Of a stretch of DNA of 64,000 bases, positions 4,301-62,521 are shown piece by piece. The stretch comes from Iphione sp. A-MEVVRFRX5 (taxonomy: Eukaryota), in NCBI GenBank assembly GCA_976226885.1, contig OZ320315.1, positions 43,090,001 through 43,154,000 of the forward strand, in the 5' to 3' direction. Under the pieces are notes generated by a model. It made no database searches. It had not been told where the DNA came from and was given only the letters and a program-made list of their open reading frames with translations. The translations under genes were made by a program, and so were the position numbers. Position 1 is the stretch's first letter, and each line of letters starts with the position of its first letter.

Positions 4301-6354
4301 TCTATCCTTTAACAAAGAACAATATGAATGATGAATGATTTATTTAGGAGAATAAACCCACCACCCTGGAAGGAATAGCTATTCCCTCCAATGACTCGGA
4401 TTTGTGTCTTGTAAACCTGGAATAGGCCCTTATTCCACCTGGAGGTTTCATTCCACAGAATACATATATATTGATCTAAAAACCGGCCATATGATCAAAT
4501 AACAGTGTTGTAAAAGATATACTGTATATTCATATTCACATATATATGTACACATGTATATAAGAACGTCCAATATATCAGTGGAATAGTACATGTAAAT
4601 GAAATGGAAATCATTCCTAGAGATATTGTATGATATGGACAAACGGTCGATGTGGAAAGCATTATATAAACTCAGTGTTACGTAAATATTATCTACTATA
4701 AGGACAATTATATATCGCAGTGTAAGCGAAGTATGGTAAAAAAATGTACTTTTATTTTGTCAGTGTTTTAACAAAATGAACTTCCGGCGACCTGAACATA
4801 AATCAAACGCTCCTTCCTAAGTAACTGGTGAATGTCACTTTGTTTCAGAGTCCATTTAGTAACACTGGCTCATTGTGTCTACTCCGCATCATGTTGGCAG
4901 CATGCTTCTAAGCCTAACACGTCTATGTTTACTCAGCACTGTGTCGAAATGGCGAGTAATGGCTTCTGCTGGGTGGTCTGTGGAGTTGGGCTTAAAACGA
5001 ATGATTGAATGCTGATTGGAGCTGCTTATTTATTGCATGTGTGGGTTGATCGAACGATAATCTGATAATTATGGCCATTTCTGCAATGCACGTATTAAAA
5101 TAAAGATACTTACCTTTGTGTAAGGGGCATAATAGATTCTTTTAATTTGCCACTAATTATACGGTCTATCACCGGCTACCAGCAATATTGAGTAGGAGTT
5201 TTCAATTGATTATATCTCTGGAATTGCATTCAACACACATTAGTCCATGACTTAAAGCTAAAATTAGACGTTGGAAGAACCCAGTCAGAGGTTGATTTGG
5301 TACAATTTGTTACCTGTAGATCGCGCCGCGGTCTTTTTTTCAGGGTCGTCTCGGTTTAGACGGCTTTGTGAGTTTGTCGCACGCAAGGTCTCTACCCTCT
5401 CAAATTTAATAACATCCCCCCATTCCTTACATTCATTTCTGTACTCTATCAAAACATCCGTCTGGCTCACTTCAAATACTCTTGACTCTAATACAATTTC
5501 TTTTCAAAATAATGGTGGAGACATGTTGTCCTTCCCTGAAGATATACCCTCCTCCAAAGGGATTTGCTTTATATGTGTCGTCCCGCCATTGTTATTGTAT
5601 ATTACTCCACACAGATATAGGACTTGAGTGTGAACTATTGATTGTTTTTCGGTTTAACTTGTGCTACGCCTGAAAATCTATATCGTCTGGCTTAACCGTA
5701 TTCTCATAGCAACCTTGAACGAGAGAACAATAGGGTTTGGGCGGGACTGATGTACCCCTGTAGTGTTTATTGGGTGGTGGAATTTATTGATATGAAACTT
5801 TGGGTCAAGTGGAGGAGGAGGGGCTGCGAGCGGATGTTAGGTTTTGTAGTGCGATAGTTGCCATGGAAAGCGTCGACTGTTTTTTCTTGGAATATACCAA
5901 GTCTATGAGGCTCGTGCATGCACTAGAACTCGAGATGCATTAATCATGAAAGTGTTGTAGTCTTCGTGTAAGAGACCTCTCAGACTATGATTAAATTGTA
6001 CGTGAAAGCTCGAATGGTTGATTAGATGGTTGTTGCTGCTCTCCCGTTCAGGCATCATTAATTCGTGCACTGTAATGGTTTTCATTGGTTCGTTATAACT
6101 CTGTTGGATTTTTAAATTAACTGAATAATTACGTTGCATGTACGTAATTTTCGACAGATGCATTCTTCAATGGGTTTCAGTGTTTTGTCTGAAAAGGACA
6201 TAAAATGATTAAATGATTAGAGTCCAATTAGCATCTGTGTAACGTATCAGTTGTATGGTCTCCATGACACCTGCGTGTGGACAATGTGTGTGGTCGTAAA
6301 ATGTAACCTGAAGACTGGCACGTCTGAGTGTGAAGTAGCTGCTTCTACGCTTTA

Positions 6355-6984: not shown

Positions 6985-9199
6985 TTAATATAAGAAGGAA
7001 AACGTCTCCGGTTGCCTTTTCTGTGAGTCACTGATCTTTGATCCGAAATGCATACCTTCTCACAAAGTTTGACTAAAAAGGCTACCACTGCCAGTCACTC
7101 ATGTCAACTAAGAATGCATCGGACTAAAAAAGCGACTATGGTTACGTATCTTGTCTGAGGCAATACAAGGCCCTTTCGCTTTGTTTTGCTTTACCTTCGC
7201 ACCCATTGATTCGTATCCCCGCTCTAGCTTGGTGGTTCCTTTGTACTCCATCTCGAGAGTCTTTGCGGCCTCACTGTCTTATATCATGAGTATACTCGCC
7301 TAGTATTGCTTGTGTCAGTGGCTCCAGCCACATAGCCACAGGCTTACAATTGCAGGCTGCATTCAGTCGCTATTTTAAACCTGATTCACACTGATAGTTT
7401 ACGCTGAACTAACGTATTTAGGACTACTTGCTGCATGCTAGCAGAGCTAGGAAAGCCTCTGCACAGATACTTATTTAAAAGGTGTCGCTTTGTGTTCTCT
7501 AAGTACGAATGTACACCTCATTCGGTAATTCACTCATCATAAACGTGCTGGATAGATCAGAAAAAAAGACAAATTTGTCAATGTGTAGGATCGAAGGAAA
7601 TTTAACTTGCTGACCCTTTAGGCTATGAGGAGTTTCGCCATTAGCATCTTCCATCAGGAAGTCGGCGACACATGCAAGGCAGGAAACTGTTGTTTTGACC
7701 TTTATAATTGCTAATCTAGGAGCACAAAAGTTTTCATGTGATCTAATCATGACTGTATTCGTTTGCTAAATAACGTAAAATATACTACATATACAACGCA
7801 TCAGGTGAAATATTTTTGGAAAGAGTAGAGCAAGTCATAATGGCAGTACTGATGATTGTACTGATTATTACTCTACATATATAAAACGTTGCCTGAAAAT
7901 AGGTCCGGCCATGAGACTGTCATCTCATACTGATATGGTTTTACAAAAACACAGTATCTATCTTACTGCAGGATATATTAGTATGTTGGTGGCCCAAAGA
8001 AAGATGTTTATTCTTATCTTTTGTATCTAGAATAACTCTTACTAAAACAGTATGATATATGTGGCACTATTTTCCTTACATTGAGTAGGAATACGTATGC
8101 CTATGTATGCACAGTCAAGCAGAAATGAGGGTTGTAACATGGTATCCCCAAACCTGTACTTTGACCCTCCCCCCCCAACTCTCCTCACATAGCTCTGACC
8201 CATCTCCGCCCACCCCTTAAAACCACACACACACACCACCCAACCAGTGCAGGTGCCGAAGGCGCTTGTTGAAGATAAAACACACTTATGTTTAATCTAT
8301 TTTTTACTGACACTACTTTGATGTTAATCTCTTAAAATGTGAATCTGGTTGAGGTAAGCTGCAAAAGTATTGTTTAAGACTTAATGGCCATGCATACATA
8401 CATGTACATTAGAACTTCTTCACATTGTCGTCGGCTCACCTAGGCTGTCGATATGCAATTCTGGTCAAATTGGCGGGGAACAGATCATTTCTCTATATAA
8501 TCTTATAATTGTGGCAAAACATTAAAAATGCAGTCACCCTGTGGTAGCTGTATATTGCGCACCAAAGCAACATACCATATTGACTATGGTTCAGTGTCAC
8601 TGCCCAAGGAGGTGGGGTTGGGGGTTCACTTCACCCTAGGGTATGTAGCAGCGATGAAAATCATTAGAATAACTTTAGAACAGTTTCAGGGTATGCTTAA
8701 TGATGTCTATAATGCAAGCTGCATACCTATAGACAATGCACAATTATTAACATGACACTGGAAATGAGGGGGTATACTGATGGTTGCAGCTTGAATATGA
8801 TTGGAATTGCAGTCAACAAGCCACCGCGGCCACTTTTGCTCGGAATGGTGTTAAAGTTCTACTGCATTTGCACTCTGTAGCTGTATGTCTTGAGACACAA
8901 GTCTGAATCTATGAAAAGAATCCTGCAGGTATCTATATGCATATCTACACATGATGAAAGTGTCTGTGGATCTGCTGAAAAACACATAGTACTATCCCCA
9001 TGTGTGCAAACCTTCCAGACCTGCCATTTTGTACATGGACATCGGAAGGACCACTCCAAGCAGTTAAGGTAGAATTATCCCCAAGCATGCAAACCCTCTG
9101 TACCTGTCACCTGACATGTGTGGGCAGAGCAGCAAACATGCCAGGCACCTGGACCTCATGCATGCCTGCAATAAGCCCAAAACCAGGTGAATAGACCTA

Positions 9200-17218: not shown

Positions 17219-19408
17219 GAAGAAATAATGACAGAAAAGAGGAAATGAGGGAAAATGGAGAGATGAAAAGTGGGGAGACGAGAGAAATTGATATACATTG
17301 CAAATCTATGGGGATTCAGACTGCATACACTTAACAGTCATCTAAACTAAACTGGCTGTGCAACCAAACCATCTGCCATTCCTACTCGTGCAGACAGTTC
17401 ACAGACAAACCCCCAGACAGCCTTTACATTATAGCGACCAAACACTTTCCGGGGCTACACCTCAGCGCTCTTGTAAGCTGATCTGAAGAGCCGTCTCGTG
17501 TAGAGGATACCAACATTTCCATGAGCTCTTTCATCCTCAGAGTATCAGAGAAGCACAACTACATGTAAATAACCGATTCGATCATATGCTACAAATTATG
17601 TGAGACAAATATACAAGTAAACATACCTGTATATGTATAACCAGTTAACATTTGTATTTATATTTTTCGACCATGAAACGCGTCAGTGGCACTTCACAAC
17701 TGACAGCGCGTCTTTTCAATACTCTCATAAAGAATGTCATGTGTCAATACACGGTGTTTATGTATACATATTACAGTCTGTAATCACATGACCGAGGAAT
17801 CGTCAAACTAAGAGCATCTAGTGCCAGAGTGTAGTGAGGTATACTTTTGACCCAGATCGACTCGGGTTTCTTGGCCCCTGCTATTGAGCTGGTGACCCAC
17901 GTTGGATCTCATTAGTAACAAATACACGCTTACATGTACATGCACATGTATATCGCAGGAACATGACTCAGTCGTGCGATACTAGTGCGCAACATGTGCA
18001 TTGGACGCCCTGTAGACGACGAGCATAGCATTATTTAACGGTGGTCCGACTGTAAGAGTAATCAAAGGAAAGTGGCCTCAGTCCCATCAGTGGTGACCGC
18101 TGATCCATCACCGTGGGCCACGTGCAGTGTCCAGAGGCGAGCGAGGTATGGCCATCTGGCCAAGTGTATACTAAATGTTCCGCCTATACCACACCAGTTG
18201 AAGCTTGGGAGAAGCAGACCGAAAGCTGCAAATCTCGCAAGACTATAAACTTTCGCCATGCATCCTGAAATGTTCTTGAGGAATTCATTCTACGAATTTT
18301 TGGAATGACAGTATTTATCATGTGGACATAGTCATTGCCTTCTCTGTGCAACAGTTACTACTGTTCTACATGTACTTTGAAAGGTATAATCTACATACAT
18401 ATGCATATACATGTATGTACATCTTTGGGAAGATGAAGATATACATGTATTACAATCTTCTCATAAAAAGGAATGTAATCCAGAAATGTTATTCATTTGT
18501 TCAAAAAAACAAGCAATATTCATGAAACGACTGATTCTTCAAGAAGGAAATTTGTGACCGAATCAAATTTAGAACACAATATTCATAATAGGCTATTTTA
18601 AGAACCTCATATTATAGGGAGTAACCATGGCGAGGCCTTTTCACCTTTTCATGTTTTCACACGTTTGGCTGGGTTGGCACCCTTCTAGTGATAAGATGCA
18701 TTATGCTTTTTAGAACATTTGTCGATCAAAGTTTCACACCAGATATATTATCAGCAGAAAGTAAACTTGCTCAGGTTGTGTTTAGCTTCAGCTGCCACAA
18801 TGCAACCTTTTGGGTCAGATAAGTCTTCCTTAAATAGGATGTCTCAAGGATACTGTCGTCAGAATTAAGTAGAGTAACGACAGTTCCTCTTAGATTTGCA
18901 CCAAGGACACAACGCCCAGTGTACTTCGTTTATTCAAAGTGTCAAATCCACGTTATGTCCAGTAACACCCTGGAAACAGCCTTTCAAATTATGTTGTGTA
19001 CCTGTTTGGAAAAGGACTCCGTAACAATTTCAAGGCCAGTCATAGAAACCAGTACTGTTCATCCCATAATATCTACACACTGCGGGAAAATGCAAGACAA
19101 TACACTTCAGATAATTTGTTTGGATCCCGCAAAGTCTGATAAGAAATTCAGTATCGAGTGAAAAGGCGCATAGACATTATAAATGGCAGTCAAGTATTAT
19201 TGATGCGTGTAAATACAATTTCAGTAAATAAGGCGCCTTCTCTACAGAAGTCTGCAAACAATACTTATATTTTGATGACATATTCCTCGCCTGTCACATT
19301 AGTCAAGCTTCCTAGTTTTTTCTATATGTTTTTGAAGACTTTCACACGTACGGATGGTTCCCTGCAGGAAGGAGAGTATAAAAATCGGTTAAGGGTAGAT
19401 ATAGGCAG

Positions 19409-20348
19409 TTAAAGCTCCCCTGCGATCCATTCCTCTCTATATTCCTACCATCCCCCCGAGTACTTTATTCTCATGTAGTTTCACCGTTGGTTTGCTTTAT
19501 ACTGTGTATATTTGGAGAGGGGGGAGATCAGTAGATCTGCTGCAGATTTGATCCCCGGTTTGCTGCTTGACTTGTGCAGTCTATACATAGCCTACATGGC
19601 TGTCAGCACCTTTGTCAACTGGGAGTGAGGGACTGCATAATGGTTACATGATTTATCAAATGGAAAAAGTAATATATATTTATTATTATCAATTAATATG
19701 GGAAGAGACCTCCACACCGCCAATTTTTCCCTTTTTCATGAATTAAAGGTATTTTCAGCATAACCTCCGGTGAGATTTTTCCATATTTTCATGAACATAC
19801 AGTAAACGTTGCACTATATTCGTGAATTTAGCATAATCCTTGGCAAAACTTGGTGCAATTTCCTAAATTAAAGGCATCTTTCACATAGCCTCCAGTAAAA
19901 TTTCCTGTTTTTTATCAATTAATGTGGGGGAAGAGGCCTCATCCCACTTTCTCTTTTTTTGAATGTAATAGTGTTCGTTACTTTATAGATTCTTTATAAA
20001 CATGTGCACTGTATTTTTTCACGCAGTTCATTAACTTATGTTTATTAATCTGAGAGTGACAAACCCTCTTGACTGAGGCAGCAAGTTGCTTAGTTGAAGG
20101 GAGGGGCACTGTAAGCTAAATATAGTCCTTAGGACTATTTTGTGACAAATAAAGAACCCAGGGTAACCAAACCCTTTTGACTGGGTCTCTGCTGTGATTA
20201 CTTGAATGGCCTAAGCTTCTTGGCATTATCAACACATCACACACTTGTACGCGGGGGGCCTAGATAAAGCCCTCGTCTACAACATTATGCATACATAAAG
20301 AGCTTGGCTCATGCCTCGCAATTTATATGGCATAATGTTGTCGACTCA
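19409..20348 (-). mobile_element. Degenerate non-autonomous Crypton derivative
   Basis: 19409 TTAAAGCTCCCCTGCGATCCATTCCTCTCTATATTCCTACCATCCCCCCGAGTAC aligns with 52724 TTAAACCACCCCTACAACCCCATTCTCTCTATGTTCCTACCATCCCCCCGAGTAC. 20262-20348 is a diverged hairpin (CAACATTATGC...GCATAATGTTG) resembling 55872-55974. No coding capacity; right end eroded. Confidence 0.6.
19660..20040 (-). repeat. Inverted copy of the 3830-4300 repeat, lying within the Crypton derivative
   Basis: Reverse-complement similarity visible by eye (AATGTGGGGGAAGAGGCCTCATCCCACTTTCTCTTTTTTTG...TATAGATTCTT). Confidence 0.65.
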
Positions 20349-25558: not shown

Positions 25559-25709
25559 NNNNNNNNNNNNNNNNNNNNNNNNNNNNNNNNNNNNNNNNNN
25601 NNNNNNNNNNNNNNNNNNNNNNNNNNNNNNNNNNNNNNNNNNNNNNNNNNNNNNNNNNNNNNNNNNNNNNNNNNNNNNNNNNNNNNNNNNNNNNNNNNNN
25701 NNNNNNNNN
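25559..25709. other. Assembly gap (N run)
   Basis: 151 Ns. Confidence 1.
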
Positions 25710-51982: not shown

Positions 51983-53070
51983 TGTTGCTAAAAGCGGTGT
52001 AAGTCAGTCATGGGAACATAATGAAGTGAGCCCAGAGCACACCGAGGTACTGACCGTTGTCATTCTTCAACGTCCCTCGTGGTCTAATGTATGCGACTCA
52101 AGGACAAAAGGGCTTTGTGAGAAGGGCTTTATCCTCAGTCGTTCTCGCACCATTCCGTTATCGTCAGTGACTTTCCCATTAGCGTAAGATTCCATCTAGT
52201 TACCTCATAACATAACACCTGTGTTTATTTTCGGACTGCAGATTTAGGTGGCTCCTGAAGCTCTCATGAAACCTCGCATCAGCTGACAGGCAAGTGAGGG
52301 TATAAGCAGTGCGCATCGAACAAAAGCCATTCCTTCTCAAGACTTTCGTCTTGAAAGGTTTCTTTGTAGGAAAACTTTTCGTCTGCCCTAGGATCCTGTT
52401 GTCATATTTTGTTTAAAGCTCGACTAAGGAATACAAGTCTTCGTGCCACTAAGTTTTAGATAATACACATACATTAGGAGGAAGCCATCTCTTTTCCGGA
52501 AGGTGATAACCTCAAGAAGAGGAGGTGGGTGTCAAAATATCAGTACCCTGTGTAGATACATAAGGCTGTGCGACGTAATCGTGCGCATGTGTGTGCATGA
52601 TTGTGTATATGTTTGTCGGTGTTCTATTTTCTCTTTGTTTATCTGCGCCGGGGCAAATATTACTTCGAGGCTAACTGACTTCGCACGCCAGCAGGGTCTT
52701 AGGCCCCTGGTGTTTTTCCACACTTAAACCACCCCTACAACCCCATTCTCTCTATGTTCCTACCATCCCCCCGAGTACATTATATTGCGTATTTGGATTG
52801 TTTCGTGGACATTATAATCTTGTTGTGTCCTTTATTGAGCTGGATTTGGACGATTGGATGGCTTCCATTTTTTCACCTGAGGCAGTTTCGGACGGGAATC
52901 GATCGCACGATCTTGTTCTCAATGGATCAGCGCTTCTGACGACTGCGCCACGAAGGCAGTTCTGTACTGAAGTGATATTCTCTGTGGTGAAGCACGTATT
53001 ATATTTCATACTATGTTTCTGGAAGGATAATATTACACTGTTTTTTTCATTTTTCATTTATTTTCTTCAA

Positions 53071-55398
53071 TCATGAAAATTCCATTTTGAAAGTTCCGTT
53101 ACCATGTTTCACAATGAGAATTCTTATGCTATCAGGAAGTGTTATAGAAAGCGTTTCTCCTTGGTTTTCTGCTTCTGCTTTACTGTTACTGACTTTTGAG
53201 TTTACAGAAATTTCACTTCTCGGTTGTACATTTTCTGGAGGTTTTTGTGATTGTTCTTCAATCTGAGCATGTAATAAATCGAGTCCCAAGTCAAAACTGG
53301 CGACGTCTTCATTCTGGTCTTTCTGTTTGGGTGCCTCTGGACACATAGCGGATTGGGCTGGTACGGATTGGGCTGGTACGGATTGGGCTGGTACCTCTGC
53401 TGATACGTCTGCCGCAGGTACACTGGGTAGGGGCGGCTGCAATAGATCACTCACACGTTGTTGCATATCAATAGATTCCCTTTTGTAATTTCTTATTGCA
53501 GAAGATCTATGACCACTACGTACTGCAATGGCTTGCTCATCTATTCCCTTTTCATATAGTCTCGTACAAAGGGTCGCTTTACCCGAATGCCCTGTAATAT
53601 GGCGTCCCTCCATATTAATGCCCGCTTCTGTACACATTTTGTACATGTACTTATCTAGTGTATGAATTCCCACCGGTTGTAAAGAAAATGATATCTTCCC
53701 CTCCAGATTTGGTAATGGTCTTCTATAAAAACGTCCTTCAGTGGGAACTTCGTCCAAATATTTTTTGAACAGATTCACAATACAACGAGGGTTATGAGGA
53801 TTGCTATAGTGGCGAACAAGTCTTGGCTTTGCCTTACACTCATTGGCTCCTGTTACTGCTTTGGCTAGACGCCCATGATAGGTCATATACTCCCGATTTT
53901 CTTGATCCAAATCAATTGAATATTGTGAGACATCTAAATTACCATGCTCATCCCTGGCACGAAAGCCAAATATTTTGCAATTATAAAAGTATGTGCCATA
54001 AGATAAACCTTTGGCTGTATTAACATTAATAACCCCAGAATCCCATAGTTGTCTCTCGTCTTGCTCCGTGATAACATCGGCCCTTTTGGGATGAGTGCCC
54101 ATACCTGTGGCTATTAGTTCCTTTCTACGTGCATCCAACGCATCGCGAAAAGTTTTGAAGTACGTGTCGTCTTTCTTGAGGAGCCACACATCTCGTTTCC
54201 CTAATTCGTCTCGAATATGTCTCTGCAACCCTGCTGCTATACTTGTCAGAGAACCTGCAAAATAAATCAGTATGTTAGAAATATTTCAAGGCTATTTTCC
54301 TTTCTGTTTCCCTCATCTTTATAGATATTTACCTGGGGGGTATGGACTGCCGTCTTTTTTACACACTTCTGTTATAAACTGGGCTAACCAGTAATCTAAC
54401 AGATAGTATTCTTGGTGATCCAGACCAGGTATGGGCCAATTAGTGTCTTCTCTTGTTGCAGGGTGCCAATTGCGCCATACTCGCCAATCACGAAAAATAG
54501 CCACAGCCCAGCACGAGGATGATCGAGTTGACTTCGGTATGCGACGTTTGATACGTTCCTCTAACTCTTTTCCGGTTTGCAACACACCAAATCGTTCAGG
54601 CCCTGTGGATCCTTGTCTGGTTCCTTCATCAATGGGTCGAATCGGCCTCTCTATAAATATGCAAAGGCAATGTATCAATATTGAGCCACATTTCCATTTC
54701 TAGTACAATTTACTTTCCAAACCGAAATTACCAAAATCAACCATGACATTTACCTGATCCAGCCGCAGATGACACCACTCGAGGTTGTTTAGGAGGTACA
54801 GGTTCCGATATAGTCCGACCAAGCACAGGACGTAGCTGTTTTTCTGGAACAGAAATATTGGAAAGTAAATAACCCAAAATACCCATTTTAGTGACATTCT
54901 ATATATTATCACAACATTTAATACACAACAAACCTACTTACCAGAACCAGCGGCAGCTGAAACGGTAGATGATCGTTTCGAACTATCTTTCCTCTCTGAT
55001 CCAGATTCAGCTGAAAACACAATAAATAATACTATTCTCATTCAACAATAAAACATTCTACATAAATAAAATCCATTCCAATTTGCCTAAGAAATACTTG
55101 AAAGTCCACATGGAAAAAAGCAATTACCAGATGCAGTAGCCGCAGAAACCACTCGTGTAGGGTGTGGAGGCGAACGATCGACACTAGCACTAGCCTTTGC
55201 CGAAATCGCAGTAATAACATCAGAAACCGGTGTAGAAGAACCCTGAGGAAATTCTTCCCATAAAACCTCCAATTGAGCTTCCTCCTCATCCTGAGAAAAC
55301 TCGTCGTCCTTCTTGTCACCATGAAAGACCTCAGGAGGCACTTCCACTTGACTCAAGGTCCTCTCCTCGAAAGAGTTGTTCACTGAAGATTCAGCCAT
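53071..55398 (-). CDS. Crypton-type tyrosine recombinase (DUF3504-like), spliced, 643 aa
   Basis: Manually assembled exons (minus): 55398-55128, 55010-54942, 54843-54754, 54650-54333, 54254-53071. Four GT-AG phase-1 introns of 117, 98, 103 and 78 nt give a stop-free 1932-nt CDS. YR catalytic-type motifs GFRARDEH, ITGHSGKAT, RSGHRS and AIRNYKR. Upstream Crypton-like segment IPKSTRSSSCWAVAIFRDW...LDYWLAQFITEVCKKDGSPYPP. Confidence 0.9.
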
Positions 55399-55654
55399 GT
55401 CCAGCAACGATACGTTCACCACGAGAGTTACACATAAAGTGTACAGTACATTATTCGAGCAGCCTTTTTATAATGTCCGATCAGCACCTGCCACGTGTAC
55501 AATTCTAAATTGGAGCCGAAAACACAGACAAAACAATATCCTTGATCGCACTTCAGCCGCGTCACCCGAGCCAATTGCAATTTATAGTTCGCGCACCCCT
55601 AGGCATTGAGTAATAAAACCTACTTGACTGGTACACGGCAGTGCCATTGGCGAC

Positions 55655-55773
55655 TCAAACCTTCTAGACTGATAGGGGGGGGGGGTGCATTCAAACCTTC
55701 TAAACCATTCAAACCTTCTAAACCGAGAGCTCGGGGGGGCATTGAAACCTTTGAAACCTTCTAAACCGAGAGC
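55655..55773. repeat. Short repeats (AAACCTTCTAAACC, about 4 copies) upstream of the Crypton gene
   Basis: Directly visible repeated motif between the ATG and the terminal hairpin. Confidence 0.75.
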
Positions 55774-55871
55774 TGGGCCATGAGAGCCACCTCGTCTATC
55801 GACTCGGTGGACCAATGCTTCTTGGGGTAATCGACAAATCGTACAGTTGTTGGGGGGGGTGGGTTTAAATC

Positions 55872-55974
55872 AGATAATGTCCTCGGACCTGTACATTATG
55901 GGTTATATAATGTACTCGGCGCCCTGGCGCCTCGTCCATTATAACCCATAATGTACGGTCCTCGTACATTATCT
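55872..55974. repeat. Crypton subterminal imperfect palindrome (~103 bp)
   Basis: AGATAATGTCCTCGGACCTGTACATTATGGGTTATATAATGTACTCGGCGCC-CT-GGCGCCTCGTCCATTATAACCCATAATGTACGGTCCTCGTACATTATCT. The arms are near reverse complements, built from repeated ATAATG(T/G)(A/C)C motifs. Confidence 0.9.
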
Positions 55975-58900
55975 ACCATTTAACTGTCAGGAGACCCAAC
56001 ATAACCTCCTACACTTGCTCGCATAACGCTGCTCTGGCTGTGGTGTACAACTTGTCAGCAATTCCGTGACGTAAACCGACACGACAAAGTATCCGACACT
56101 ACAGTGTTCAAGTGATTGCGAATACACGGGTAGGTTTGTCTACTCGACACACTGCTGAAGTGGTCACTCCTCATAACGCCATTTACCGTCATTGCTTATG
56201 TCTGCATGCGTCCACTTTAAAGAAAAAAAAATGTAGAGTGCTTTCATGTAATTTGATTTAGACGTGTCTGTTCCACATGCAGCTGTTTGGTGTGTGATGT
56301 TCAATGCTACGTGCAGCTTAGAGAGAATGACATTGATAACTAGAGAGAGAATAGCAAGATTATTATCATTATCCACGACATGAACGCTAGTGCCACGGAC
56401 GACAAAGAAGGTACAGAGATAGACATATTGACACGAAACTAACAAGCTTTCATTAGGTGTTTATTTGATTGATTTTGCATTTTCATAAGTTAACATATGT
56501 ATACCTGACGACAAGAGAGGTGACACCACAATAAACAGTAGGTTCATAGTTTTTTTTCAAGTTTTTGTTTCAAGGAGTATCCACTAGAAGTTGTTGTTTT
56601 CATCACGAAATTATATTTGCCTGATTCGTCTGTTTGACAGTTGACTCCCTCACGTCGTAACTTGCTTACCTCACGATGTGGGTTCGTCCCTGATGTACTT
56701 ATCAGAGGCTCTATCTTATCGTCCTGCTGTACTCACCTGGCACAGTTTGCATTTAATCACTGTAATGTATCAATCATTAACCTTCCTGGATAGTGAAAGT
56801 AGAAATACTCTATCTACTAATAGATTGGTTTTTAAATGCCTGAGCCCTTGTTAAATTCAGTCTCAGGGGGCGATTTTTTTTCCGTTTCATTAAATATCAC
56901 AATATTGGGGCTAATACCTTAACAATAGTCTTCTTTGTATGCGCTCTCACCCTTGAACATCCAGAGATGAGGTCAGTGAGGCAATTTAAACCTTTCATGC
57001 GCATTCTCCAAAGATGAAAGGGTATTGTCTCAAACTTTCTATAAAATAAAACAAGTATATATTTTTTTAATAAAGCGGAGATGTTTTGACCACTAGAGAC
57101 CCTGACTCACTGAAGTGGAAGCCGCTCTCCTCCTACGAGCTCCGTGTGCAGAGGTGAAGGCCCTGCTTCCTGTAATCAAAGGAGACGGCCTGACGCCTGC
57201 CGTCCAGACATCGGCCAAACTGCAGACTCGAACTATTCGGTCAGGCCTTGCTGCTGTCATCGCCTCGGCCCAAGCCACTGCTGCACGGCTCATTTGAGAG
57301 GTGACCAGGCCAGAGGGTCACCTACTTCTACTTTTTACGCCCCCCCCCCTCCCGTCGTCTACTGGTAGACATATGTCCATCACTGCTGCACCCGAGAATA
57401 AAGACGTCCGGCTGCCCAGTGAAAATAAGCAGCAGGCCGTACTACTTCTAGTACTAGTAGTACTAATACTAGCGGTGGAGAGATAAAACTGCCATGCACA
57501 GTTTGTTTATGTAGAGAGAAATACAAGTTCATAGCACTAGAGGTCCATGCACAGCGGCCGTCTTTCCATGTGTCAAACAACTCGGTCCTGGATGTGTGGC
57601 TGTGATTCGCAAGAAAAACCAGAAACATTTGCTATGTGCCTATCCATGGGTCCGGACATCACCCATATGGATGAGTGAGCATAATGCTGATCAGTTGTAG
57701 ACCTGTTCTCCAGCGTGCATGAGACTCTGGTCCTAGCTGTCAAGATGGTCTCCATGGGTTGCTTTGCCTATTGTGTAGTTGATTCGTGTGCATGGAGAGA
57801 CCATCATGGAGGATTTTCCTGGAGAATCATCCATGATGATATGAAACACTGCACCGTGCAGTATGTACTGTGTTAAATACCGGTACATGGAAAACACTGC
57901 CTTACTTTCCATTGTGAATTTAATGTTAGGTAAACTCTTTACATTTAGAATTAGGCAGGTAATTCAACAACCGTACGAAATTATTCGTTGCAATTTACTC
58001 AATAGTGCCAGTGTTTACTCTCATGCTACATACATGTATTACAGATTGTGTAACACAATGAATCTAATCATGCCCATCCGAGGGGCGTCAACAGTGCAGT
58101 AGAACCCGGAACACTGCACCGATATGACCTCTAGAACACTCCACAGGCATGAAATAAATGTATATTATACGTGTACTGTATATGTGCATGTACGTCAGCA
58201 TTCTGACGTCGACAGAATGTTTTAGCGAGCATGCATATCAAGAACATTGTACTTAGCTCTCCGTATATGCAACAGAATCTTATTTGTTGAGGGTGAAGAA
58301 GTTCGAAACGTGACTGATATAATAGATAAAAAGGTAAGTGGGTGACATAAAAATGACGTCCTCAGGTTCCACGTGGCATTTCTTTTACATATTTGCTGCT
58401 TCAAAGAGTCGATCTGCGTTTAGTTGTTTATCCGAACTATTTAATTCTTCTCGGTCAGTGAATTGCTGTATAAGGGAAACACTTAATATATGCATATTGT
58501 AGTGTTAACAATGCAATAAGGAACATCCTCATAGCCTAGCCCATGCTTCCTTAGGTGCACATTCCAGTGGCCTGGTGAAACGTGCCCTCATTGCTCCTAT
58601 GTTAAGTACATCATATATGTAGTTCCATGTATCGGTATGCATTTTCGGGATAGAGGGTTACGTTACTGCACCCCTGAACACAGCCTGAATAGGCTGGAAC
58701 AGATCCGCACAGGGATCATATTAACGACTGTCACAGCACCATCCAAACATATATGCATATGGGTTATACGTTTTAGCGCAGAATTTGTACACATCGGGCA
58801 CGTATATGTGCATTTTTCCATGTGCACACTGATTTGAATGCATCCACTGATATCAACGTCAAGCGGTGCATTTCTTTTCCGTGTGTGCATGTGTGTGTGT

Positions 58901-60925: not shown

Positions 60926-62521
60926 TTACTCCTTCTTAAAAAACTGGTGGAGTGTTGGCTGTACCCTGATCCTTTGGGCCTGGTTTTTCTCAAGAATGTT
61001 AATAATGTCCATGACAGGGTCCAATGCAGGGGCAATACCCTTGGACAGGCAATACACCCTAACATGATCCAGCATGTTGAGGATCTCATGATGATTGTGC
61101 TGGCTTCCTGGGATGGGATCATCATCAGCATCATCATCATCATCACCATCCCTGGATTCCTCATCTGGTACCTGTAGACCAGCCTTCTCCTTGGCCTCCT
61201 CAATGATACGTTGTTCCCACCCCATGTCCTGGGGATCATGAGATGGGCAGCTGGTCATCTCCTCATAGTCCTCCCTGGTCAGAGCTGTCCCTGGGAGGTG
61301 AAGTCCTTCATGTGTCCTTCTGAGGAGCTCTGCCAGGGGGATCTCCTCCTCATCTTCCTCCTCAGGCTGTGACTGGCTGAGGTCAGCATCACCTGGGTCA
61401 GGGGATACTCCTGCCTTCTTGAAGCACTTGAAGACTGTGCTGGCTGGCACAGCCTTCACAGCTGCCTTCATCCAGGTGATGGCCATGTGGACATCAACAC
61501 TTTTGATGATCTGCTGGGAGTCTGCTCCACTGTCCAACTTGGCCAGCACATGCCTGAGGACTGCTTTCTGATAGTGGCTCTTCACACATTTGATGATCCC
61601 CTGGTCAAGGGGCTGCAGCAGGGAAGTGGTGTTGGCAGGGAGGAAGACCAACTTCACATTGGACACCTTCAGATGATGTGGATGTGAAGGGGCATTGTCC
61701 AAGATCAATGCCACTTTCCTGCCCTGGGCCTTCATCTTCTTGTTGAAGGCCTGGAGCCACTCCTCAAAGATTGAAGAGACCATCCAGGCCTTCTTGTTGG
61801 ACCTCCATGTCACTGGTAAATCATTGAGGTCCAAATTCCTGAAGGCCCTGGGTCTTGCAGCCTTCCCAATGACCAGGGGCTTCTCAAAGTGTCCAGCCAT
61901 TGATACACAGAGGGCAAGAGTCAACCTCTCCTTACTCTTCTTACCCCCAGCTGTGTCACTGCCCTTCACAGCAAGGGTTCTGTCTGGGAGGACCCGGAAG
62001 AAGATACCAGTCTCATCCATGTTGAAGATGTCTTCTTCCTTGTATCCCTCAAGGAGGGTGGGCAGCCTCTCATGCCACTGCTCTACTGCCCCCTCAGGGA
62101 CACTGGCCCTCTCTCCAGACAACTTGACCCCTGAGATGCAGTGCCTCTTCTTGAATCTGTGGAGCCATCCCTCAGAGGCAGAGAAGTTGTCTATCCCCAG
62201 TTCCTTGCTGATATGCTGGGCTCTCTCCCTGATCAATGGTCCTGAGACAGGGACCTGGGAATCCCTGGCTGTCTGAAACCAGGTGAAGACTGTCTCATCC
62301 ATGAGGGTGAGGTCAGGGGATAGATGTCTTCTCTTGGCCTGAGGGTTGAAGGACCTATCAAAGTCCTCCATGATGGATGCCTTCCTCTTCAAGATGTTGT
62401 GGACTTGGGTCTTGCCTATGTTGAATTGGCTGGCAAGAGTCCTCTGACTTTTACCCTCACTAGCCTGGATCAGTTTCACCTTCTCAGCAAGACACAGTTC
62501 TCTTCTCTTGGGGGAAGACAT
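60926..62521 (-). CDS. pogo/Tigger-family transposase (CENP-B-like HTH + DDE_1), 531 aa, intact
   Basis: Uninterrupted ORF. N-terminal psq/CENP-B HTH (RRELCLAEKVKLI...LASQFNIGKTQVHNILK), second HTH (FSASEGWLHRFKKRH) and catalytic motifs NMDETG, ILDNAPSH and LQPLDQG. There are 30 residues between the 2nd and 3rd Asp (DD30D). Acidic C-terminal tail. Confidence 0.96.
   Translation of the reverse strand: MSSPKRRELCLAEKVKLIQASEGKSQRTLASQFNIGKTQVHNILKRKASIMEDFDRSFNPQAKRRHLSPDLTLMDETVFTWFQTARDSQVPVSGPLIRERAQHISKELGIDNFSASEGWLHRFKKRHCISGVKLSGERASVPEGAVEQWHERLPTLLEGYKEEDIFNMDETGIFFRVLPDRTLAVKGSDTAGGKKSKERLTLALCVSMAGHFEKPLVIGKAARPRAFRNLDLNDLPVTWRSNKKAWMVSSIFEEWLQAFNKKMKAQGRKVALILDNAPSHPHHLKVSNVKLVFLPANTTSLLQPLDQGIIKCVKSHYQKAVLRHVLAKLDSGADSQQIIKSVDVHMAITWMKAAVKAVPASTVFKCFKKAGVSPDPGDADLSQSQPEEEDEEEIPLAELLRRTHEGLHLPGTALTREDYEEMTSCPSHDPQDMGWEQRIIEEAKEKAGLQVPDEESRDGDDDDDADDDPIPGSQHNHHEILNMLDHVRVYCLSKGIAPALDPVMDIINILEKNQAQRIRVQPTLHQFFKKE

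Follow-up and report, generated by a model that had tools for sequence, protein, structure and literature searches.

The window analysed here is a 64,000-nucleotide (nt) stretch of the Iphione sp. A-MEVVRFRX5 assembly (contig OZ320315.1), and all positions without a locus name are positions of this window. Between 52724 and 55983, on the minus strand, it contains a structurally complete transposon copy of 3.26 kb. We take this copy, with a probability of roughly 80%, to be a DNA transposon of the CryptonA type, in which a single five-exon gene for a Cre-like tyrosine recombinase lies between cis-acting end modules. Read in the direction of the gene, from its 5' to its 3' terminus, the element is made up as follows.

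55980-55983, minus strand: 5'-terminal TTAA, at the outer edge of the palindrome.
55865-55983, minus strand: imperfect palindrome of 119 nt, the 5' end module (gapped self-match, E 1.7e-19).
55856-55868, minus strand: left copy of the inverted repeat (IR-L), 13 nt, beginning with TTAA and adjoining the palindrome on its inner side.
55652-55766, no strand assigned: an 18-nt motif (CATTCAAACCTTCTAAAC type) in five copies, with runs of G among them, in the stretch from the palindrome to the ATG.
55398-55128, minus strand: exon 1 (model), 271 nt, with the ATG at 55398; acidic and rich in Ser and Ala.
55010-54942, minus strand: exon 2 (model), 69 nt, symmetric, phase 1.
54843-54754, minus strand: exon 3 (model), 90 nt, symmetric, phase 1.
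54650-54333, minus strand: exon 4, 318 nt, N-terminal QRICH1-like domain, no ATG.
54254-53071, minus strand: exon 5, 1184 nt, catalytic domain, low-complexity tail and C-terminal beta-hairpin; TGA at 53073-53071.
53057-53062, minus strand: AATAAA, 8 nt past the stop codon (sequence reading).
52771-52785, minus strand: arm-like segment of the 3' end module, the exact 15-nt reverse complement of 55905-55919 in the palindrome's inner right arm.
52724-52735, minus strand: right copy of the inverted repeat (IR-R), at the 3' terminus, ending in TTAA (52724-52727).

An earlier note on this DNA had proposed five exons, joined through GT-AG phase-1 introns into a stop-free protein of 643 residues, and our reading of the sequence agrees: the exons total 1932 nt, or 643 codons and the TGA, and every exon is open in its frame. 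The introns measure 117, 98, 103 and 78 nt, all interrupt the gene in phase 1, and all begin with GTAA and end in a pyrimidine run and AG, while the codons split at the four junctions specify Ala, Glu, Glu and Gly. The exons were searched one by one, and at the junctions only these four split codons were read. Stretches homologous to exon 4 are present in several related loci (L001-L004 and L006); exon 4 has no ATG, and an upstream exon is therefore needed. At the exon 4/5 junction the split codon GGT (Gly) restores the conserved YPP-G-SLTSI, as in P0021, and in an intronless gene of Branchiostoma belcheri (L006, 6175 and 6179) the stretches homologous to exons 4 and 5 stand exactly one codon apart. 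Outside support, by homology, is available for this junction alone. Exons 1-3 are predicted from their open frames, good splice sites and matching phases, and exon 1 showed no significant similarity to the Lingula N-terminus. Exons 1, 2 and 3 resemble one another at their 3' ends, donor sites included (54754-55152; 25-nt repeat family D2), which points to a duplicated exon end as the origin of the small symmetric exons. Isoforms that skip exon 2 or exon 3 would keep the frame, both exons being symmetric.

The product is clearly related to known tyrosine recombinases. In the Pfam check that the earlier note had proposed, exon 5 (393 residues) scored above the cut-offs for both DUF3504 (PF12012; 57.2 bits against 29.7) and Phage_integrase (28.4 bits against 27.1), exon 4 gave a weak match to the N-terminal domain of QRICH1, and no fused host domain (zf-MYM, BTB) was found in the Crypton protein. 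A word-based search returned 32 relatives, from Lingula anatina, Branchiostoma, oysters and two ENA assemblies, the best of them 47-59% identical to the window protein and none of the 32 near-identical. We aligned a family of 13 sequences, 12 of which cover the motif of the second catalytic arginine. R98, E102 and H103 are invariant in this alignment, and K131, H222-S-G, H248, R254 and Y256 are nearly so. The motifs that had been picked out beforehand as the catalytic set, FRARDEH, HSGK, SGHRS and RNYK, are all present and fall in conserved columns, and the catalytic residues R98, H222-x-x-K225, H248 and Y256 are conserved in the brachiopod, amphioxus and oyster relatives.

The catalytic domain is predicted to have a Cre-like fold. 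With an AlphaFold (AF2) model of exon 5 (mean predicted local distance difference test score, pLDDT, 70.8), Foldseek gave the QRICH1 DUF3504 domain as its top match; more than 20 Cre structures came next, at a probability of 1.0, followed by the phage Brujita integrase, Flp, lambda Int, XerA, Tn1549 Int and XerH. A sequence search of the PDB finds QRICH1 only, and Cre surfaces by fold alone. The same exon has two further features. Its last ~28 codons (53074-53160) encode, after a disordered linker, a conserved C-terminal beta-hairpin (pLDDT ~84) that is common to most relatives and has no named counterpart in Pfam; it could serve subunit-subunit contacts. Within the coding tail, three exact tandem units of 15 nt (53349-53394) give VPAQS three times over, in a low-confidence linker that is not conserved.

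The ends of the element are more structured than the earlier note had allowed, for its statement that there is no terminal inverted repeat (TIR) is contradicted by the 119-nt palindrome, by the 13-nt pair of IR-L and IR-R (12 of 13 positions match when IR-R is inverted, with one indel) and by the perfect 15-nt inverted match to the palindrome at 52771-52785 (E 0.001). It had correctly placed a TTAA at each end, at 52724-52727 and 55980-55983. With a TTAA frequency of 0.0043 per nt in the window, the pair alone is weak evidence and could have arisen by chance; both TTAAs fall on independently defined structural edges, and the analysis supports placing the two ends at 52724 and 55983, give or take a few bases.

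Read on the gene strand, the palindrome has four CGAGs, placed as mirror images about a GC-rich apex, and no CTCG. When this strand folds into a hairpin, CGAG opposite CGAG makes two G.A mismatches between C-G pairs, while the complement gets pyrimidine mismatches; the gene strand folds at -38.7 kcal/mol (z -11.8) and the complement at -33.1 kcal/mol. The two ends of the element, once joined, fold at -52.9 kcal/mol; the integrated end, taken together with its actual flanking sequence, folds at -43.8 kcal/mol. When a loose pattern of four spaced CGAGs was searched for, the palindrome gave the only match in the window, but 82 of 200 shuffles matched as well, and the pattern was not used as a statistic. 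The array of 18-nt motifs that lies between the palindrome and the ATG is possibly a promoter or a set of accessory protein-binding sites.

Nine related loci (L001-L009) were compared, and the palindrome layout recurs at seven other sites in them, five of which also have the end repeat. In L003, L004, L006 (amphioxus), L007 (oyster) and L009 the recombinase gene is preceded by a palindrome of 89-167 nt, which has a GTAGATA-like outer start, three or four CGAGs on the gene strand and a GC-rich apex between CGAGs (in L007 and L009 the counts are 3-4 CGAG and 0-1 CTCG). A further copy lies reversed inside L002, and L008 has a degenerate version. The window, L003, L004 and L006 each have the apex motif CGAGGC...GCCGAG a single time, always on the gene strand and ahead of the gene. 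In the window and at the five other sites, a repeat of 10-14 nt follows the palindrome and is found again, inverted, downstream of the stop codon. Its sequence varies among elements (TTAAATCACGG, TTATACCACG, TTAGAACAT, TTTAGCACACAG), and the two copies in each element agree. The tetranucleotide at the position of the TTAA is TTAT, TTAG or TTTA in the relatives; each family thus has this tetranucleotide as a part of its own end repeat, and TTAA, which belongs to the repeat of the window element's family, is no universal target.

Other properties of the ends are also found outside the window. L004 has an equivalent 15-nt arm-like copy at a similar distance from its terminus, and hairpin folding of four elements favoured the gene strand over its complement every time, by 2.7-7.1 kcal/mol. 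In a crude ungapped count, arm-to-arm pairing is higher within elements than between most pairs of elements, the exceptions being pairs drawn from L003, L004 and the L002 nested elements, which are related; because small bulges make the count less sharp, we use it as supporting evidence only. The B. belcheri locus (L006) also has tandem repeats of ~190 bp and a second palindrome of 150 nt (7211-7700 and 7838-7987), which sit between the stop codon and the 3' terminal repeat (~8035-8046).

The strongest evidence that these end features belong to the element comes from L002, where a non-autonomous Crypton derivative of ~600 bp occupies 4311-4907 on the minus strand (ENA assembly ERZ25767047). 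This derivative matches the L004 family over a 115-nt 5' module (91%) and a 129-nt 3' module (94%), with an unrelated middle, and its host site is an intron of another Crypton, the one that separates the N-terminal from the catalytic exon. Because it keeps only the two end modules, it shows these modules to be the mobilised, cis-acting ends. Mobility of the lineage is seen only here, in a relative of the window element.

We assigned the element to the CryptonA group, as a probable member, by its domain, fold and ends. Its gene encodes a tyrosine recombinase with R98, H222 and Y256, in which the second R is K225; this recombinase is DUF3504-related, and the Pfam scan found no GCR1_C or other domain in its C-terminal tail. 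Within 52724-55983 there is no further open reading frame (ORF) of at least 100 residues and there are no long direct repeats, and thus no reverse transcriptase, RNase H or long or split repeats of the DIRS/Ngaro type. A piggyBac-type TTAA element was considered and rejected, since the only gene is that of a tyrosine recombinase and the relatives have TTAT, TTAG or TTTA. What was observed is the gene with its conserved residues, the fold, and the end modules with their conservation. We regard the element as a new, structurally complete Crypton of the CryptonA kind; the transposition competence that the earlier note had thought possible is putative.

Several points weigh against this assignment. 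The search for a 5' palindrome came up empty in L001 and L005, and it did not identify the one belonging to L002 itself (a palindrome at L002 3099-3246 is without the CGAG layout). Exons 1-3 have no homologues in the relatives, the 5' boundary was set by comparison with L003 (TTTA) and L004 (TA), to within about 5 nt either way, the 64-kb window holds no second full Crypton copy, and the second arginine position of the window protein is occupied by Lys (HSGK). A change from Arg to Lys at the second catalytic arginine weakens catalysis in well-studied recombinases. The copy could accordingly look complete and be dead, its reading frame being open only because the insertion is young, or the Lys-for-Arg lineage having stopped recombining, and the fact that exons 1-3 are a model only also leaves room for this. 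We think such a dead copy unlikely, although it is a possibility to be taken seriously. Lys is found in 10 of the 12 family sequences (two oyster proteins have R), and because of this we regard it as a trait of the lineage and not as decay of the window copy; the Lys-bearing lineage, moreover, has spawned a non-autonomous derivative that inserted in an intron elsewhere. In the window copy itself, the reading frame is open over 643 codons, the four splice sites are undamaged, no conserved catalytic column has been lost, and the mismatches in the palindrome are only the conserved ones.

The presence of one full copy in the window would also fit a domesticated, Crypton-derived host gene like QRICH1, ZMYM or KCTD1, with a role other than recombination and no mobility, as would the replaced second arginine, the ZMYM2-like or QRICH1-like labels of some database relatives and the finding that domesticated QRICH1 is both the closest solved structure and the top fold match. 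We nevertheless agree with the earlier note in preferring a Crypton, and consider domestication very unlikely: the catalytic Y256, H222 and H248 are kept, whereas domesticated DUF3504 genes lost such residues (PMC3212892), the protein has no fused host domain, a pogo/Tigger transposase ORF is found ~5 kb off, and the gene is flanked by intact transposon ends, which occur gene-free in the mobile non-autonomous derivative of a relative. Less likely still is that the palindrome is an unrelated foldback miniature inverted-repeat transposable element inserted at TTAA, with the true 5' end of a plain TIR element at IR-L (55868). TTAA is found on both sides of the palindrome, IR-L and IR-R on their own would make a classical 13-bp TIR pair with flanking TTAA, and palindromes are common in several related loci; but the full layout (outer GTAGATA, four gene-strand CGAGs, apex and IR-L) precedes the recombinase gene in four or more other taxa or assemblies and is conserved across phyla, the L002 derivative carries the palindrome too, a 15-nt stretch of the palindrome recurs in the 3' module, and the relatives, with TTAT, TTAG or TTTA, show no fixed TTAA. 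We therefore continue to treat the palindrome as part of the Crypton.

The Crypton sits in repeat-rich DNA. The window's content of this Crypton family is the one full copy and one solo 3' module.

19410-19468, minus strand: solo 3' module of 60 nt, 82% identical, with the similarity beginning exactly at the TTAA.

No recombinase gene lies beside this module. A TTAA and ~10 nt before it (19389-19402) resemble the outer edge of the 5' palindrome, and the whole of 19389-19468 could be a non-autonomous element in decay, or could have come from recombination at one end; tblastn matches of exon 4 near 19071-19261 had E values of at least 0.6 and were taken as noise. The transposase mentioned above is an intact ORF of 531 residues of the pogo/Tigger type (60926-62521, minus strand; DDE_1 147 bits, HTH_Tnp_Tc5, CENP-B_N). 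Just before the left flank of the element, a proline/alanine-rich ORF (51717-52187) is broken by an assembly N gap (51834-51982), and a second N gap lies at 25559-25709.

From the arrangement of the ends we infer a mechanism, and with it the circle, the crossover point and any present activity. The 5' module would consist of the TTAA, a 7-nt spacer, the 119-nt palindrome and the 13-nt IR-L, and the 3' module of the arm-like segment, ~35 nt and IR-R ending in TTAA. The recombinase would excise the element as a circle, and joining of the ends over one TTAA would set IR-R against the palindrome, giving a longer palindrome (IR-R, hairpin, IR-L) whose stem would be extended by pairing between IR-R and IR-L. 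This rebuilt palindrome would be the recombination site of the element, and the strands would be exchanged at the TTAA that separates IR-R from the hairpin; integration would be the reverse reaction, into a target that contains TTAA. The TTAA at both ends would then be a shared crossover sequence and not a duplication from staggered cuts, and the integrated element would carry its recombination site split at one edge. From a split site of this kind it would follow that strand exchange takes place at TTAA and that the family of the window element uses TTAA-containing targets.

A more speculative idea, which we hold only tentatively and think rather improbable, is that the recombinase reads a folded DNA structure instead of a short duplex core, so that an animal transposon would be using an attC-like substrate. 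IR-R, the palindrome and IR-L would fold in the circle, as a cruciform or a single strand, into one long stem, in which the inverted repeat pair and the outer stem would flank an unpaired 7/5-nt spacer, and the conserved tandem G.A mismatches (CGAG opposite CGAG) would mark the gene strand. It is the conservation of these strand-specific G.A pairs that makes the idea worth testing.

To our knowledge, Cryptons are the least understood class of eukaryotic DNA transposons, and no transposition assay exists for them. An intact predicted Cre-like enzyme and compact, conserved end modules (~130 nt and 60-130 nt) are what a first excision/integration or binding assay would need. The element is also a possible source of a eukaryote-born site-specific recombinase with its own site, and its strand-biased hairpin makes action of a eukaryotic tyrosine recombinase on folded DNA directly testable.

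In several respects the element is like animal CryptonA: it has a single gene for a DUF3504-type recombinase, no reverse transcriptase, long terminal repeats or GCR1_C, an invertebrate host, and a non-autonomous derivative in a relative. For animal Cryptons, however, no terminal repeats, direct or inverted, have been reported (Kojima and Jurka 2011, PMC3212892), and a full-text literature search found no description of Crypton palindromes. The window lineage, with its 5' palindrome of 90-170 nt and an inverted repeat of 10-14 nt, one copy of which lies just inside the palindrome and the other at the 3' terminus, departs from this published view of featureless ends. Fungal Cryptons have direct repeats of 4-6 bp at both termini, which have been taken as recombination substrates (PMC3212892), and a circular excision intermediate has been proposed for Cryptons (cited in PMC3212892). 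The window element resembles CryptonF in its proposed circle and in its short terminal direct repeat (here TTAA), but it is without GCR1_C, its recombinase belongs to another clade, and its ends are structured.

The likeness to Cre/loxP lies in the fold, in the spacing of H-x-x-(R/K), H/W and Y, and in the inverted arms around the crossover region. Unlike Cre, to which it is 12-16% identical, the window protein has Lys at the second arginine, and the candidate site is a palindrome of ~145 bp, as against 34 bp in Cre/loxP. The integron attC and the attP(+) of the CTX phage are folded single-strand substrates of tyrosine recombinases, and we know of such folded substrates only for bacterial integron integrases and for XerCD on the CTX phage. 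The candidate site shares with them an imperfect palindrome, conserved strand-specific imperfections, one strand that folds better than the other, and a split at one edge when integrated; this is a resemblance of DNA alone, between a putative folded substrate and known ones, with the proteins set aside from the comparison.

Among domesticated proteins, the comparison is with QRICH1 (PDB 9hjt), the closest solved structure, and with ZMYM2-4 and KCTD1, which share its Pfam family. The published list of DUF3504 genes consists of KCTD1, KIAA1958, ZMYM2-4, QRICH1 and WOC (PMC3212892); of the domesticated genes named in the earlier note, ZMYM2/3/4, QRICH1 and KCTD1 are on that list and KCTD15 is absent from it. 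In the domesticated genes the tyrosine and the second arginine are gone, as is the histidine in most of them (PMC3212892), whereas the window protein has its tyrosine and both histidines, and its gene lies between transposon ends.

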